A stretch of DNA of 63,992 nt, the filler included, from Hyphochytrium catenoides (lineage: Eukaryota; Protista; Hyphochytriomycota): the NCBI GenBank assembly GCA_900088475.1. It is 16 parts of 16 records of this genome, joined end to end, with 100 filler letters (N's around TTAATTAATTAA, not from the genome) between each part and the next. Parts side by side here need not be neighbours in the genome. Positions count along the whole stretch, not along the records: positions 57,727 to 60,219 come from FLMG01003196.1; 15 more parts are not named here. One strand, 5' to 3'. Below the pieces are notes generated by a model. That model was not told the DNA's origin and made no database searches. It saw only the letters and a program-made list of their open reading frames with translations. This document shows, one piece after another, positions 5,809 to 60,219 of the stretch. Made by a program: the position numbers and the translations under genes. The stretch's first letter is position 1, and the number at the start of each line of letters is the position of its first letter.

Positions 5809-8800
5809 AATGGGCCATAGCAGAAAAGATGAAGAGAGAAGAGAAAAGGAGGCGCCTCGCAGCTCTCAAATTGCAGGTAAGCCGGCCCTTTGGTCATTTT
5901 TTTCTCTCTCTCAAGCTCTCTTTCTCTCTTCTCTTGGCCTTCAGTAGGTAGTCAACAGCAATCTCTCTCTTGAGCTCTCCTCCTCTCTCTCTCTCTTTTT
6001 TCAACTTCACCACAGCCCTATGTCCTCCATACTTTCTTGCTATATGCAAGCAGATCTAGGACATCTTTGAGTTGAATTTATTGCCTGTATGTCTCTCTCT
6101 CTCTCTCTCTTCTTTCTCTCTTTGTTGATTCATTATTTACTAAGGGGCTCTTGGGTCTTTCTGTTTCTCTCGTTCACCCTAGAAATGGCTGAGGCAATCG
6201 TTTGAGAGGTCTCGCCTCATACTCACTCTCTCTCGCCTACATCTCCGGCGGAAAGAGAAAGAGAGAAAGGCCAAGGCCACTGCTGTCATCCTCAATTTCT
6301 TCTCTACTTTCTTTCTTCTTTCTGGGTGGAACAGAAGACGAAGACGAAGAAAGAGATTGGAGAGCTTGTTAGCGAGAGGCTTAGAGAGTAGGAGAAAAGA
6401 GAGTGTACGAAAGATAGTGCGATGGAGTAAGACACTATTAGGAGAATGGAAAAGACAGAGAGAAGAAAGAAAGTCAAGAGAGAGAGAGATGATGCTGAGC
6501 CAAGAGAGAGAGAGCAGAGCTAGGGAAGAGGCAGAGGAAAAACGTAGAAAGTTGCCTCCGTCGCAGCCTTTGAGGTAGGCCTCTCTCGTCTTCTTCTCCA
6601 AAATTTGACTAGCCCATACTCGCAATCTATCTCTCTTTTCTCTCTCTCCCTTTCTTTCTTTAGTGTGTCTCCGTCTCTATGCCTCTCTAACTTCTTTATC
6701 TGCTGGCGTGTCGTGGCAAATTAGTGTTCAGGATAAGCGTGCCTCTCAGCTCATGATGTCAAGGAATGTGTTACGTCAACGGATGAGAAGGAATGGACTC
6801 ATTGTAAGTTAAACCTTTGGGCTGATTTTTGCTTTTCTCTCTCGCTCTTTCTCTCTCAATCCTTAGATCGATTATTTGCCCCTGGCGTTCTCTGCTCAAA
6901 AGCTTCCCTCTCTTCGTCTATTCCCAAGCCGTAACTCTACTCCTCTCGGGTCGCACTCTTCTAGAGTCTCTCACCTTCTCCCGGTTGTCAAAGCTTCTCT
7001 TTCTGCCCTTTGCCCTCTTGCTCACCACATGTCCACAACCCTTAAATTTGCCCTCTCCTCCTCGATACTTCCCGTTATCTGTTCCCTCTCCGCGACTTCT
7101 GTTCTACTTTTCTCTTTCCGTTTCCTCTACTTCCTCTTAGCCAGTTTCTTTTCTTCTTCCCAAACAGCTCTCTAGCACCGGAGTTCCTGTCTCTAATCCT
7201 TTTCTCGTTCTTTTGGGTCCTTCTCTCTCGCTCTCCGTCTCCACATGCGAGGTACCACAACTCCAATGCCTAAGTCTCTCTCTCTTTTGTTCTTCTGTGC
7301 TAGCTTGAGGATGATCGGACGGTCGAGCAGATCGCTGCTTTCCTCCTGCAGTTCTGGTATCGAACTCGCACAGCACACCGCGCCTTCCGTTGGGCAAGAG
7401 AGGCTGCAAGAGCCACAGAGAGAAGAGAGGCAGCAGAAACCATCCAGCGAAAGTTCAGACGATGGCACTGGGAGAGGGTACGTAAGAGAGAGCATAAGGG
7501 CTAGAAGACTGCGCCAAAAGGGCGGATGAGCACGGAAGAGAGAGAAAGACGACGACAGACAGAGAGAGATAAGCATGACAGCTCCCGACAGGCTACCACG
7601 GGTTAGTTCCTCAGAAGACCTGGTTACCTTGCTTAGGCTCTCCTCTCTGGATAGCTCTCGCTAGTCCCTCTGCTCCTAAATCTTTGTCTTCTACACTTCC
7701 AGTTCCGGGCGATCAAAAGGCAAGTACAAGCTCTTCTTCAACAGAAGCACAAAGGGGAAGAACTCCGGCAGACATTGGAGAAAGAATCAGCGGCCCTGGC
7801 GGTCGAGAAGAGCCAGCTAGAGACAAAAGTAAAGGGACAACGTGAGTCAGACTGCCGGATAACATTAATCTCTGTCATCCCTTTGTTATTGTTTCTTACT
7901 GTGCCCTGCCCCTTACATTACCCTTCTCTCTCCTAGAGGACTTCCTCTCTCGCCTAAGAGCAGAGGTGGAAGCAGCCCGAGCGCCTGGCAGTCGCGGTGT
8001 CAGTACTGGAGTGTTGACAGACGGCGTTCCTGTCTATTATCCTGTGCATGTACTCATTAGAGAAGTGGCGGGACGGGTGAAGACAGTGGAAAAGAGCCTT
8101 CGGAGTAATGTACGCGATATCGGCTCTCGTTTCTCTCTCTCTCTCCCTCGCTACTTCTCTGTGTCTCTCTCGGTCCCTCGGTACTGCTTACATAATGATG
8201 GATCAATACGCTTGCTTGGTCCATCTCTCTGTCTTACCTCTAGAGAATCCTCTCACTCTCCTATTGAAAAGTCTGACATCCTGCGATATCTTTAGGAAGA
8301 GCAACTGGCCACCGTCGATCGAAAGCTCGATCATATCGAGAAAGACAGGCTCCCATCTCTCTTCTCTACAACTCGTCGATTAGATCACAGTCTTTCCTCT
8401 CTCTCTGCAGAGAGAGGAAGACTTCTTGCTTTACATCAGGCAGTGGAGGCCAAGCAGCTGGCCAGAGAGGCAAAACTTCGTCATTTAAAGCGGCCGATGC
8501 GGCATAACGTAGAAGAGCTTCGGCGTCATCTACAGCTAGGAACCGTTGAAAGCATCCTTGACAGTTTCTTGTCTCTAAGCAATAGTCAGAACTTCATTTC
8601 TCGTAGCATGCAGCTGATAAACGAGGAGGAGGGAGAGACAGAGATAGGATGCGCTGAGAAGAGAGAGAGGAGAAAAGAGAGAGCAGATATTCTCTCATCT
8701 TCGCCAACCTTAGAGAATCTTCATCGTATTCAAACGCTAGAGCTCCTGGCGGTGATGAAACCTTTGCTCGGACTGTGGAGGCGGACTGTGGAGTACGAAA

Positions 8801-8870
8801 GCGGCCCGGAGATCATTGAGATGGAGCCGCAGAAGCAGGTGGAGCTCAAACCGGACTATCATTTGACTCT
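5809..8870 (+). CDS. Probable upstream exons (charged/coiled-coil) of a multi-exon gene, possibly the Ig-domain gene
   Basis: Open R/K/E-rich segments (e.g. ~6183-6575, 7300-7480, 8410-8860) are bounded by pyrimidine-tract AG and GT sites. The exon chain is not resolved. Confidence 0.4.
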
Positions 8871-9216
8871 ATCGGTCCCCCTCTCGTGCTCCCTCGCAGT
8901 ACCCTACTGATAATTCTCCTTCATCCATCCCAGCTGTTCCGCTCCGTTTTTTGCCTTGATGTGGGCTCTTTCCCTGTGCTGGGGCACCATCAATCTTTCT
9001 TTGTCTCGTGATCTCAGCTGGTTGTGGTGAGAACTCCTCTATGCCACATCCCACAGCAGAGTGCTTCTTTACTAGATTCCGTTCCTTTGTGTATGACTTC
9101 TTACCCCATTCTCTGCCTCTCCTGGCCTTCTCAGTTGTCCGTTGGGGTCATTGTTTGAAGTCTTGCAGGCAGATTGAGGGGCATCTTATGTGTTTCTTTC
9201 TCTACTTCGACTCTAG

Positions 9217-10210
9217 GTGATCACCTTACCTGGTGGGAGCGTACAGCTCCGCTTACTGGTGAGAGGGGCCTGGCCTCTGTCCTATCAGTGGAATAACTCT
9301 GGCTTCCCTCTTCAAGATGTGAAGGTGGTAAGTAGGAGAGAATGGCGAGAGGAAGGAGAGACGCGACTCCATGAGGAAGTTGTCTTCATGTTGGAGAATG
9401 CAAGAGTCGAAGTCCATCACGGTTGGTATCGATGCAGTGTGAGCAACAGAAGTGGCAGAGGAGAGACGGCGGCAGTGAATGTCTGTGTTTTAGAGCCGCC
9501 GCGCCTCCTGTCTGATTTACCGAGATCCATGGCAATTGAAGAAGCCGGCACTCTCAGGTTATCTGTCATCTGCACTGGCAGGTAAGGATTGAGGAACTAG
9601 ATGGAAACGGGCATCATGAGGGAGAGAAATCATGAGACATACCATAAAGTGTCAATGCTCTGAAGCGGAAGGCGGGAATAATGTTACGAGAGACTCCGGA
9701 AGGTAGAATTCAGAGGGAGAAGGTAGTCCAAAGAGTGAACAGAAGCAAAAGATGGGTGATCTGCTAGTCATTAGAGATAGGGTTGGAAGGAGGCCACCGA
9801 ATAGAAAGGGCTTCTGAGCTGGATGAGTGGAAGTGAGGCGTGGTAGAGCAGTGAAATAGGTAAAGGATGAGGCGTGGGACAAGCACTTGAGAGAAGTAGC
9901 AGCCCAGTAGGTCAAAGCATGTTTTCACATTGATTGAGAATCCTGCCCCCATTGCTTTCTTTTTCTCTCACTCTTTCTTGTGCTCTTCCCTCCGTTCAGC
10001 CCGCCCCTTCGTTATCTATGGCACAAGGACCGCGATATCCTTCCATCGGATCCTTTGAGCAGCCAACTGGTACTCGGCGTTGTAGCCTCCGAAGATAGTG
10101 GCTGCTATCACTGCGTTGTTCGTAATGAAGCGGGAGAATGCAGCTCCTCCTCTCTTCAGCTCAGCGTCTTCCGAGCTTCGGGAGAGAGAAGGAAGACGGA
10201 ATCCAGTTAA
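9217..10210 (+). CDS. Last two exons (9217-9581, 10000-10210) encoding two tandem immunoglobulin (I-set-like) domains
   Basis: Motifs PLSYQW…HGWYRCSVSNRSG and LSVICTG|SPPLRYLWHKD…EDSGCYHCVVRNEAG. A phase-2 GT-AG intron (9582-9999) joins the frames; TAA at 10210. Confidence 0.8.
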
Positions 10211-10393
10211 AGTGCTCCCACCAATCCGTGCAAGGAGTGGGCCGGGCAGACACTTCAGAAGTAGCTATTATACATTGCCCTGAACCAGGCTAATAGAGCT
10301 CCATTGCCTACTGTCAGGAGGCTAGGCAAAATGGCGGTAATAGAGATAGAGACAAGTGAGGATCAAGAGAGTTGCGAGCAGAAGATGGACTGA

Positions 10394-12271
10394 TTAGCTG
10401 ATAATGGTAATAGCGGGTCTGCTTTCGTTCTTAAAAAAGACAGCGGAGCGAAGAGACAAGTATGTATCAGGGCGAAAGCGGAGATATTGAGATGTACGAG
10501 TGAGCGATGGAGCAGTATCAGAAAGGATATACCTGTATCCTATCCAGTGGCGAGATATTAAGGCACAAAGCAGCGCTGCGATCCCCAGCATAAAGGAGAG
10601 ACAGCCCACCATGAACTGGGTCCACTCTGGGCTAGAGAAAAGTAATATGAAAGCACTGTCCAGTATAGATCCTGGCTCAGCTTTGTTGTGCTGCCCGACC
10701 GCCACGAAAATGCCACCCTACAGAGAACGAAAGGGAGGGGAGAGAGATATAGAGACAGGTAGATAGATAGATCGATAGAAGATTAAGACAGGACGAGAAT
10801 GAGAACGAGGAACCAAGCACGTTGGAATAGCTCTGAGAATGGTAATTCAAGGTATGCCCAAGGGATTGTTGTAAAGTGCATTTGCAGTTGAACTGAAGGC
10901 AGGAGAGTGAAGAGCTGGATCTCGTAGAAAGGGCTGTTCTTACATTATGTCGGACGACTGCCCCTTCTCGATACCATTTGTTTTCCTCCCATGCTTGCGG
11001 GTTCACCTGCAGCCATTCACAAATGAGCCAAAACGCAATGACAGTGGTGAGTCACAGATCCGGATTGATTAGAACAGAGATTATGCATCTCGTCGAGGGG
11101 CAGACGAGGAAGAGTAGGACACGACCAATGTAAGGTAGGGTTAGATGAGCGGATTGGGTCCAAAGGAAGGGAGGCACCAACGGCTAACCTGGGAGGTTAG
11201 AACCATTTGCCAGCCATGAAGATCCTCAGCGCGCTCTCGGAGCGCCAACCTCGCCGCCCAGGTGTAGGAGGCGAACAAGATCATGGCTACGTTAAGAAAG
11301 CATATCACGACGGAGATGATGGCATTGACGAGATCAAAGTAGACGTTGCCAAACTGTGAGAACGTCATTGTAAATTTATTGGCTCTGACAGTAACTAAAA
11401 AGGCAGTTGGGCCACACACCTGGATAGAGAGTAGAGGTAGAAGACTTGTCAGATAAGTCCCCTCCAAGCAGCGGCTGAGAGGCAAATATGCTGGATGGAA
11501 GTGCTTTGCTTCCTCCAGCCTTAGCTCTAACCAATGGAACGTTATACCCCTAGAGAGGAGAAAGACGTTTGACAGTAGAGATGTAAGAGGATGGATACCA
11601 GCATCAAGGGAGGACGAGGAGAAAGGCAAGGAAAATAGAGAGAGGAAGATGAGAGTCCTGGAGGATGAGAAAGAGCAATCAGCTCCTTGGTACAGGCATC
11701 CTCACGTACGGAATAGCAAGAAGGAACGTTATCTTTGCCCATGATGTCTCATGAAAGGCATTGTGAACTACCGCCCCAAGCAGAACGCCAGAAACAAAGA
11801 GTACAAGCACTCTGATCCGACCAGACGTTGCGCGCAGAGACAATGAGGATATAGATAGGATGCCATGTCGCTGACATAGCTCCCACACGAGTCTTCTTGC
11901 TAGTAGGGTAGCCAGCAGGATCATCAAATGAAAGTTGTATCGGTAGAAGTTCTGAAGAAGAAGGAGTTAGGACCTTCCGGCACCTAGCAATGCTTTGAAG
12001 CACGGCGAAGTGGAAGAGGTTGGGCCACTTTACCTTGCCATAGAGTATGGTTTGATGGGCGATGAGGTGAAGGATGCAGTAGCTTGTCAGCACTACCTCC
12101 AAGGCACTGCGACGGTCCTTGTGCAGCACGATGACTCCTCCATCTTTGTTGACTTGAAGGTCCCTAGTCTCTTAAGAGGCGATCAGAACAAAACCTACAA
12201 GAGGCCCTCCATTATTAGCGCCTTACCTGCCGCGCGAGCTTTACTGGGAGCGAGACGCTTCTCCTTGTGTT
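10394..12271 (-). CDS. TMEM39: TMEM39-family multi-pass membrane protein, multi-exon; 5' end runs into an N gap
   Basis: LLARRLVW motif and C-terminal HGWQ…QAWEENKWYREGAVVRHN|GGIFVAVGQHNKAEPG…FILLFSSP resemble TMEM39A/B (LARRLVW; W…WPQGVLVKH…YKAVGHYNVAIP…FFFSNP). Ends are approximate. Confidence 0.75.
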
Positions 12272-57726: not shown

Positions 57727-60219
57727 AGACAGCGCTGCAGCTCGGTTGGAAGCATCATCTCTCCCTCTAGCGGCGTCCCTTCTTTCTCCGCAAGCATCTT
57801 AGCCCCTCTACGCAGAGGGGAGAGCACAGAAGAAGGAGGCTCCTGCTCTGCTGGAAGAATAAAAGGTGCCAGCAGTCTTCCAGCGAAAGAGAGCTGAGAG
57901 AGAGAGAAGCCGGGAAACGACCACGCCATAACTCTTTGCTCAGTGTCAAAGAGAGGAGGAGCCACAAAATGGATGAGAAGACGGAAATCTACCGGCTCGG
58001 CCGGGCTTTGTCTCTCTTCCTCTTCCTCCTTTTCAACTTCGTCTTTCCCGGGGGAGAGAGCCTGATGCAAGGCAGGAAAGAGAAGAGAGGGCGTATAAAG
58101 GAGCCTCTGACGGCTTCTTAAGCCTAAGACTTTGGTCCACATGCCAATGGTGGCTGGGGACGCGAGAGATGGAAATGGCCTGTCAAAGAGGACGCACTGC
58201 CAAGAAAGTGGGAGAAAGTAGGACAAGTCGAGAGAGAGGAGAGAAAAGGTTGTCACAAGGACGTGGAAGTTCGCCTCTCGCGTGTACAGCCCGCGAGAGC
58301 TCCACCAAGTCCGGAGCTGGGCTCGGTCCTTTGCATCTCCCCAGTAAGGCATCACACGCAGCTCCTAAGAGAGTAGCCAGATGAGGACAGAGAAGTCCAT
58401 TAGGGCGAGAAACGAGATGCAAGAAGGAGCAAAGTAGAGCAATGCCGTAAGAAAGCCAGAGGGGAAGAGAGAGAAACGTAAAGATAGACAGCGCATAGAA
58501 AATTATTGCAGAGAGAAACAAAAGCCGCCGCAATCCCGGCACCTACCTCCGCATATTCTCCGACAGAGTCTGCCCAAGACTCGACTGTCTCCTCGTCTGT
58601 GACGACAAGGAAGCAGCCCCAGAGGCCTACGGTGCAAAGATGGGAGAAGTAAGAGAGAATCTCCTGCTGCATGTGCTTCACATCCTTTCCTCCTAGAAGC
58701 ACAGCGTTCGCTCCTCGATCTCTCAACTTGAAGAGAGAAAGAAGTCGCTCAGCCTTCTTCTCCGGGTTTGGAAGGCCCTTCAGACTCTGCGTCAAACTCT
58801 CTTTGGAAGGCGCCATCAGAGCCACAGGTCCTCCCTCCCCTTCCTGTTTGACAGTTCCCTCTGTCAAGAAAGCGCCTGGGAAAGCGGGGACCTCGCTTGG
58901 GCTGACTCTCGCCTCTAGGGTTTCTTTCTCTCCCTCTTTCTCATCTCCTCCTTCTCCGTCATTGACTGGAGATTGCTCTGTCTTCGTCTCCTTCTGCTGC
59001 GTTGTTTCTTCTGCCCCGTCAAGGACGAGATCCAGCCAAGTCCAGGCCTCAGGAGCTACGGCTGCCTCGGGGCCGAACGGATTACTTATCTTCTTCGATA
59101 GCTGAATCACCTCATTCTCATCCACTGGTTCTCCGTCAATGATTACTTTTTGCCCATCTTGGCCTAGGGCGCGAGTCTGGAGCTGTTTGAAGTCCTGTTC
59201 CCACCGTCGAAGAGCCTTTCGTTGCCGTTCATAGCGCTCGGAGGCAGAGATGACAAAGGGAGAAGAAACAGAGTTAGGAGAGAGAGGGGTTGCATCTTCC
59301 TCCGGCACTTTGGCGCCTTCATCGGCTTCCCCGTGCTCTACCTTCACTAGAGAGGAGGACGAGGCCAGTAGCGGACGAGGAGAATTTGGAGAGAGAGAAG
59401 GCTGGGAAGTCATCTTGGGAGACTTCTCTTCCTTGATGCTCGCTTCCAACGCAGTTCCAGTCGCTTCTTCCGTCGACGTAGCGGTGTCTCCTTGTTCTGG
59501 GTCACCCCCTAAAGCCTTGGCGCCTGAGCTCTCATCCTGCTGTTTTTCGTCCTCCTCCTCCATTTTGGTGGGAGAGACACTCTCTCCTTCCGTCTGCTTC
59601 CCAATCTCCTCATTGTCTTCTTTTACTGGCTGCCGGATTCCCTGGATATAGTCTGAAAGCGCTTGGAACTCGGAGAGAAGATAGTCCCTCGTCTGATCCA
59701 GCTGCTGTCTCTCTTCCTCTCGCTTCCCAGCCAGCAGTGCCAGGGCTTCCTTTCGCTCTTCATCTCGCTGGGCCTCTGCTTCCTTTCTCCTTCTCTCCAC
59801 TTCCGCTGCTTTGGCCTGCAGAATGAGTCCTCTCACGACTCCAAACGCCTCACGCGCCATCTTTCTTCCTCTTTCTTGCGCGTCTTTAGCCAGCTTCTCT
59901 TCTTCCTCTTCCCGCCTGAGAAGTCGTTGCTGTGCCTTTTTGGCACACTCATACGCGATGTGCCTGGTGAACACTAGCCGTCCAACTCTTGCTTCTCCAT
60001 AATTTATAGCTCGGATGTAGAGCTCATTTCTCCCTTCTTCACTCAGAACTTCTGTCGACCAGTAAGAGCGGACTTTCTCTCCAATCCTCTTCTGAAGAGC
60101 GGCCTCTTCTTCTCCTTCTTCGTTCCGCTGTTTCCTACTCTGCAGAGAGAAAGAGAGAGTAGAGTCGAGAGAATGGGAGAATGCACGGTGCTCTAGTCTC
60201 TGACGAGTCATTTCCTTGG
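57727..60219 (-). CDS. INO80-like protein (DBINO-like helix plus Snf2 lobe 1) with degenerate ATPase motifs; intron 58546-58365; both ends truncated
   Basis: LWGCFLVV…W…|ELRVMPYWGDAKDRAQLRTWW…LYTREANFHVLVTTF…YF…W…RQRLL…LIHFVAPPLFD…LAPFIL is colinear with INO80. Confidence 0.88.

Follow-up and report, generated by a model that had tools for sequence, protein, structure and literature searches.

We analyzed a stretch of 63,992 nucleotides from Hyphochytrium catenoides (GenBank assembly GCA_900088475.1), hereafter the window, in which 16 parts of 16 records are joined end to end, and we studied positions 57727-60219, which come from record FLMG01003196.1. This piece carries, on its minus strand, a gene whose product is most likely (with a probability of about 0.72) a member of a conserved family of proteins with an inactivated INO80-derived ATPase lobe 1 that would work as ATP-independent chromatin adaptors. 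Its lobe 1 has lost the Lys and Thr of Walker A, the Glu of Walker B and motif III, and keeps the structural core residues. The same dead state is found in oomycetes and in environmental eukaryotes, and the full-length relatives have no lobe 2 and carry CXXC fingers instead, with a forkhead-associated (FHA) domain in some of them.

A spliced gene with an INO80-like lobe 1

Judged from its sequence, the piece, with a G+C content of 51-57%, holds a real, spliced, protein-coding gene that forms the single long coding structure of the region (Table 1). Exon A reads through 557 codons with no stop, while its two alternative frames contain 26 and 22; exon B reads through 212 codons, again with no stop (7 and 6 in the alternatives), for a total of 769 codons. 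The longest open run on the minus strand reached 605 codons; in 2000 shuffles it averaged 116 and never exceeded 263. When the intron is left unspliced the frame shifts and meets a stop at 58400. The splice junction is exact, because the alignment with the relatives described below continues through it ungapped (...YCPDLRVLPYWG against ...YAE followed, across the junction, by ELRVMPYWG).

The best match of lobe 1, in sequence and in fold, was INO80, the Snf2-family catalytic subunit of the INO80 remodelling complex and the namesake of its subfamily. Residues 2-93 of exon B matched INO80 chains of the PDB with E-values of 1.7e-16 to 1e-12, whereas CHD4, from the next subfamily, gave 0.09. Pfam reported no model at E≤1 for either exon because the domain is highly degenerate, and exon A gave just a chance coiled-coil match in the PDB. 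The AlphaFold model of exon B, computed from an alignment, had a predicted local distance difference test score (pLDDT) of 81-91 for residues 1-95, with an alternation of strands and helices, and INO80 ATPase chains were its top fold matches in Foldseek. A relative from Thraustotheca clavata (P0006) matched INO80 at 4e-34, SRCAP at 9e-19 and SWR1 at 5e-16, and therefore the lobe derives from the INO80 subfamily. The sister subfamily SWR1/SRCAP/EP400, whose split ATPases share the lobe 1 fold and came second, matched far more weakly, and its members are active two-lobe ATPases. In another relative (P0001), a model built with the family alignment had a pLDDT of 85-95 across lobe 1 and superposed on INO80 over ~230 residues with a root mean square deviation of 3.5-4.3 Å and 34% identity. 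The dead domain is thus predicted to be a folded RecA-like lobe.

Loss of the catalytic motifs

An alignment without gaps through motifs I and II revealed that the changes in the H. catenoides protein are substitutions. At motif I, the canonical INO80 sequence GINGILADEMGLGKT is replaced by GANAVLLGGKDVKHM, and the positions of motifs II and III and the end of lobe 1 have changed as well (Table 1). A scan of the six frames of the piece found no G.GK[ST], DE[AGSC][QH] or [ST]GTP. To quantify the loss we compared the rows of exon A and exon B, column by column, with 82 canonical INO80s, whose alignment has 110 columns conserved at 90% or more. The protein keeps 2 of the 16 conserved columns in DEMGLGKT, DEAQ and TGTP and 40 of the 94 elsewhere (Fisher p 0.026); therefore the loss is concentrated at the catalytic sites and core positions survive, among them WG.FL, W, PYWG, R..W, FH, T, D, W, R.R, LHF, P.F and PF.

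A first-pass annotation of this DNA, which gave no strand for the gene, had described ~770 open codons with a clean phase-0 intron, INO80-specific signatures and degenerate motifs reading LGGKDVKHM, DRPF, TPSL and PFILPA. The codon count, the 182-nt intron with its gapless family junction and the distance between INO80 and CHD4 in the PDB search bear out the first two points, and all four motif readings were upheld in the alignment. An intact GKT or DExx motif, named there as one of the outcomes that would speak against this reading, was absent from the alignment to INO80, and the scan of the six frames with the patterns above found none.

Table 1. Features of the gene in positions 57727-60219 of the window.
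Feature	Positions	Strand	Description	Evidence
Putative 3' end of an upstream intron	60140-60219	minus	Pyrimidine tract, then CTGCAG (60140-60145) with acceptor AG at 60141-60140; ...CTCTCTTTCTCTCTGCAG followed by AGT	
Exon A	58547-60139, open up to 60217	minus	Pre-motor N-terminal region and first half of the degenerate lobe 1	Frame; colinearity of the C-terminal half with the family
DBINO/HSA-like charged helical region (probable)	59642-60073	minus	VRSYW.. through IAYECAKKA to DYLLSEFQALSDYIQ	hhalign
Acidic Ser/Glu-rich low-complexity linker	59303-59641	minus	No alignment to relatives	Translation
Family-conserved pre-motor blocks	58865-59254	minus	..ERYERQRKALRRWEQDF (FDxxW block), ISNPF..W.WLD, PAFPGAFL	MAFFT
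Degenerate motif I	58670-58717	minus	G.N.VLL kept; P-loop replaced by LGGKDVKHM (58670-58696), no GKT	
Intron	58365-58546 (182 nt)	minus	GTAGGT...TCTCTTAG; GT..AG, phase 0, T-rich	
Exon B	57727-58364, open to the piece edge	minus	Second half of the degenerate lobe 1, PYWG to PFILPA, and ~40 further residues	
Motif II position	58173-58184	minus	DRPF for DEAQ; family signature D-x-P	
Motif III position	58083-58118	minus	RSRQRLLYTPSL against canonical CRNRLLLTGTP; TPSL at 58083-58094; family RQR kept	
Glu-rich insertion	57993-58082 (30 residues)	minus	In frame, after the motif III position and before the next helix	Alignment gap in most relatives
End of lobe 1	57849-57992	minus	VDFRLLIHFVAPPLFD, RVMAWS, family-specific 10-residue deletion, PFILPA (57849-57866) for PFMLRR	

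A family of dead-motif proteins

We searched 1.84 billion cluster representatives with exon B using HMMER and obtained 324 matches at E≤1e-3. The top seven (P0001-P0007, E 1e-25 to 7e-18) are dead-motif proteins that rank above the canonical INO80s, and eight further ones were found among the remaining matches (P0012, P0014, P0019, P0023, P0059, P0060, P0122 and P0146). All of them lack GxGKT; the family is also marked by the retention of G.N.(I/V)L and WG..L(I/V)V on either side of it, both of which H. catenoides keeps. At motif II most of them read D-x-P (DRP, DSP, DHP, DVP, DTP or DLP, and DEP in P0060), the proline being absent from P0019, P0059 and P0146; by contrast, of the 100 listed matches whose motif II region could be placed, 91 keep DEAQ or DEAH. 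The relatives also have CRQR, or in its wider family form (C/S)RQR, for CRNR, VDxRLLxHF for QELWALLHF and (E/Q)(K/R)V.AW followed by a 10-residue deletion. The H. catenoides protein has every one of these characters (DRP, RSRQR, VDFRLLIHF, QRVMAW and the deletion). No protein of the library exceeds 49% identity to it, and most are ~40% identical.

In a maximum likelihood tree of 93 rows, made by a quick search and covering the part that begins at PYWG, the H. catenoides protein and 14 family rows lay on one side of a branch with a support of 99 in the Shimodaira-Hasegawa-like approximate likelihood ratio test (SH-aLRT), P0003 and P0012 being the nearest. Independently of the tree, the deletion and the replacement residues that the members have in common argue for one origin of the family, and since the same loss and the same replacements occur in several oomycete genera and in environmental eukaryotes, the dead state would be old and maintained.

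The named members come from Saprolegnia parasitica (XP_012201893.1, P0007), T. clavata (OQR99517.1, P0006), Aphanomyces invadans (RHY30852.1, P0019), A. euteiches (CAK4723920.1, P0005) and Phytophthora ramorum (KAL4151985.1, P0122), and the remaining ones from metagenomes, read-archive assemblies and one unannotated NCBI assembly. The oomycete members resemble the H. catenoides protein in their dead lobe 1, where D-x-P, CRQR and VDxRLLxHF occur together with the deletion, and in the upstream NPF..W.WL, and they lie on the same tree branch. They differ from it in being full length and 30-44% identical; it has its own Glu-rich insertion and its piece ends before the C-terminal part.

Among the full-length relatives the nearest is P0003, encoded by an open reading frame (ORF) of 1239 codons, with no introns, on a 7 kb, G+C-rich and Ala-rich contig (JADMIO011096175.1) of the very fragmented, unannotated assembly GCA_016307145.1 (L002). 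P0014 is a fragment of 101 residues from a 789 bp scaffold (L006, European Nucleotide Archive (ENA) ERZ19033097 scaffold_234805), rich in Lys, Ile and Asn, suggesting an A+T-rich organism. Its motifs match those of H. catenoides in most detail (RQRIMYLPSLF, PIDFKLIIHF and SWSLPG), and it may mark the nearest sampled lineage.

The region N-terminal of the motor

Upstream of the lobe, exon A has charged helices with a probable, though unproven, likeness to DBINO/HSA. A comparison of its residues 73-230 with the DBINO part of a profile made from 54 canonical INO80 N-termini gave a P-value of 5.6e-5 and a probability of 66% in hhalign. There, IAYECAKKA falls on the conserved A..C.(K/R)E and DYLLSEFQALSDYIQ on LNFLITQTELYSHF, in the same order as in canonical INO80. 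On the other hand, the Pfam DBINO model found nothing in exon A at E≤1, and an hmmsearch of exon A with the canonical N-terminal profile was not significant, with low-complexity bias. The DBINO-like helix of the first-pass annotation hence has moderate support, from hhalign and against the silence of Pfam.

Further downstream, we aligned the pre-motor region with P0001, P0003, P0006, P0007 and P0122 using MAFFT. In its C-terminal half, exon A follows the family order through ..RWEQDF (FDxxW in the relatives), ISNPF..AWTWLD, PGAFL and G.N.VLL, with P0003 as the closest sequence, and the family profile matched the canonical post-DBINO segment up to GINGIL with a P-value of 7.5e-5. The gene and its family have an order in common with INO80: putative DBINO-like helices, post-DBINO segment, G.N.(I/V)L, WG.FLV, PYWG..DR..LR..W, FHV, WQ, R.R, LLHF..P.LF and PF.L. 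Unlike INO80, they lack GxGKT, DEAQ and TGTP and have their own substitutions and the 10-residue deletion, and the Pfam DBINO model is silent on the N-terminal region of the gene and of its relatives.

Domain architecture of the relatives

Pfam recognized in the relatives only positions ~34-218 of the 290 of SNF2-rel_dom, which correspond to lobe 1, with no Helicase_C and no DBINO. In contrast to INO80, the full-length relatives lack the Helicase_C lobe 2 and the long insertion, and therefore also the arginines of motif VI; zf-CXXC stands in their place, with FHA in some. One or two zf-CXXC were seen in P0002, P0003, P0005-7, P0019 and on two metagenome contigs, L001 and L007, and a C-terminal FHA domain was found by Pfam in the Saprolegnia and Thraustotheca proteins; we presume that this FHA resembles that of MCRS1, a subunit of the INO80 and NSL complexes. 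By eye, the oomycete sequences also contain C2H2-like fingers. On the 66 kb contig L001 (ENA ERZ23491423 scaffold_389, 6001-12093) the ORF of P0001 is followed by ORFs on the same strand with two CXXC, a RING and an FHA, which are probably one or two intron-containing genes split by a prokaryote-type gene caller, and on L007 a CXXC ORF follows that of P0012. Pfam saw no CXXC in the fragments P0059 and P0060, nor any CXXC, or FHA at E≤0.01, in the Phytophthora protein (P0122), whose C-terminus resembles the FHA region of Saprolegnia and Thraustotheca by eye only. An AP2-like motif suspected in the C-terminus of P0060 was not confirmed by Pfam.

The CXXC fingers of P0006 matched those of the CpG readers KDM2A/B, FBXL19, MLL, DNMT1 and CFP1 in the PDB, with E-values of 1e-12 to 1e-6. 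This likeness holds for the relatives, positions 57727-60219 having no CXXC, and to our knowledge none of the known CXXC CpG readers is fused to a Snf2 lobe.

Proposed function and alternative explanations

We propose that the family descends from the INO80 subfamily of Snf2 ATPases, retains the N-terminal helical region and the lobe 1 fold of INO80, and has lost the residues for ATP binding and hydrolysis. Such a protein should be unable to act as a motor or to translocate DNA and could work as an ATP-independent chromatin adaptor. Its dead lobe 1 and DBINO/HSA-like helices might form a protein- or DNA-binding platform, possibly for actin or actin-related protein (Arp) type partners, and the CXXC fingers, if the H. 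catenoides protein has them, would anchor it on DNA with unmethylated CpG. The first-pass annotation had likewise proposed a selected, catalytically inactive INO80 paralogue, with a role as scaffold or decoy for Arp and Rvb modules. Selection and inactivity are supported by the same motif losses and replacements found on one branch in oomycete genera and environmental eukaryotes, paralogue status is plausible, and an Arp/actin scaffold role is possible through the weakly DBINO/HSA-like helices. The Rvb decoy, on the other hand, is not supported, since in every full-length relative the motor ends with lobe 1, and both Helicase_C and lobe 2 are missing; in published structures the Rvb1/2-binding insertion of INO80 is located in the lobe 2 region. 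More tentatively, and at odds that we put well short of even, the oomycete, environmental and H. catenoides proteins could form an old half-motor INO80 pseudo-ATPase family, made of a DBINO/HSA helix, a dead lobe 1 and CXXC, that serves at CpG-rich DNA as an ATP-free targeting subunit for the actin/Arp module or other partners of the INO80 complex, or as a competitor of these.

Several points weigh against the adaptor reading. The significance of the column test is modest, and the likeness to DBINO/HSA is weak, falling in charged, coiled-coil-like sequence. The branches of the tree are long and the search was quick, so that long-branch attraction could inflate the support of the clade. The closest relatives in the library, at ~40-49% identity, are too distant for an estimate of the ratio of nonsynonymous to synonymous substitution rates (dN/dS). 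Moreover, the H. catenoides piece ends ~40 residues past lobe 1, and the presence of CXXC and the absence of lobe 2 are extrapolated from relatives that are ~40% identical; the partners proposed, actin/Arp and CpG DNA, are ones that we infer.

The strongest of the alternatives, which we nevertheless consider unlikely, is that the gene is the sole INO80 orthologue of the organism, degenerated in its lineage, with no working INO80 beside it. No canonical INO80 was identified for the oomycetes that bear the family among the matches looked up: ten canonical INO80 matches came from insects, a sanchytrid and unnamed sequences, and none from an oomycete. Yet a degenerated orthologue would be at odds with the grouping of the gene with dead-motif proteins of distant organisms, in place of an isolated long branch, and with the derived residues in common, which argue for one old origin. 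In addition, INO80 has been inferred in the last eukaryotic common ancestor and most lineages have kept it, so its wholesale replacement in several lineages would be less likely than a paralogue (10.1101/2021.11.30.470311).

It is very improbable that the gene is a neutrally decaying INO80 pseudogene whose open frame is a leftover, even though all the catalytic motifs are destroyed, Pfam recognizes neither exon and a low-complexity insertion interrupts lobe 1. The 769 codons carry no stop or frameshift (against the shuffle maximum of 263), the splice sites are intact and their junction exact, and the loss is concentrated in catalytic columns, with core and family-specific residues kept. Furthermore, the same dead state is conserved in many taxa, and the model of exon B is confidently folded over residues 1-95.

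There is equally little chance that the protein still binds or hydrolyses nucleotide through non-canonical residues (the Lys of GGKD or VKH and the Asp of motif II), aided by an unseen lobe 2. Almost all of the family has the motif II Asp, Lys residues lie near the old P-loop and the C-terminal part is beyond the piece edge, but members differ in the length and sequence of their P-loop segment, with no conserved Gly-Lys-Ser/Thr, and the full-length relatives, which have no Helicase_C, have no motif VI arginines either. Finally, that the gene is a canonical INO80 masked by unrecognized introns, frameshifts or sequencing errors has a negligible likelihood: more small introns are conceivable in a spliced gene, but the alignment is gapless through motifs I and II with substitutions and not shifts, no frame holds a motif and independent relatives have the same replacement residues.

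Relation to described proteins

We know of no Snf2-family motor turned into a conserved pseudoenzyme, the textbook members all being active translocases. If the family is what we propose, lobe 1 and the N-terminal helices of INO80 would have a second, ATP-independent job, for example as a binding platform, which could also help to explain what they do within INO80 complexes proper. Full-text literature searches returned no description of dead-motif INO80-like/CXXC proteins. The first-pass annotation, which knew of no described equivalent, was right in that no paper was found, though its relatives do stand in the databases as 'hypothetical protein' or 'Chromatin-remodeling ATPase INO80'. The latter is the automatic UniProt name of P0007, P0006 and P0019, despite their lack of GKT, DEAQ and Helicase_C, whereas P0005 from A. 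euteiches is labelled 'unnamed protein product'. Hence this INO80-derived half-motor pseudo-ATPase family is present in databases, mislabelled, and apparently undescribed. The automatic name can mislead work on oomycete pathogens as well as surveys that compare remodeller repertoires. In a survey of chromatin proteins, the combination of Helicase_C and SNF2_N was near-universal in remodellers and INO80 belonged to the ancestral set (10.1101/2021.11.30.470311).

Other features and searches

The Glu-rich insertion had a pLDDT of 53-58 and is absent or shorter in most relatives, so we take it to be probably a disordered loop. P0004 has an unrelated insertion at the same site. At the other end of the gene, the putative acceptor of Table 1 suggests that exon A really starts at 60139 and that the last 80 bases, with the first 26 open codons, may be intronic. 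The family alignments found no homology upstream of that point, but the frame stays open through positions 60140-60219 up to the piece edge. Rfam and tandem-repeat scans of the piece gave nothing relevant.

Word-index protein searches, capped at 8000 candidates and for that reason ill suited to this family, returned nothing for exon A, P0003 itself and P0007 for residues 770-1125 of P0003, and P0001, P0002 and one canonical INO80 for the family profile. A scan of metagenome loci with exon B found no relative, and one with a degenerate pattern produced three loci: L003, with a match of 28 residues, and L004 and L005, both on Joint Genome Institute (JGI) metagenome contigs. L005 (5747-9427) was rejected as a member, being a canonical intron-containing INO80 with DBINO, CRNRLLLTGTPIQN and KPFMLRRVKKDV, and L004, which gave the same match, is likewise taken to lie outside the family. 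In the ESM Atlas, lobe 1 of P0001 retrieved generic SNF2 clusters only. The first-ranked one, nearest to it by language-model features, holds 91 eukaryotic proteins, Chlorophyta being the commonest phylum, with the SNF2 N-terminal domain only and without ResIII/DEAD, and might consist of further dead-motif relatives.

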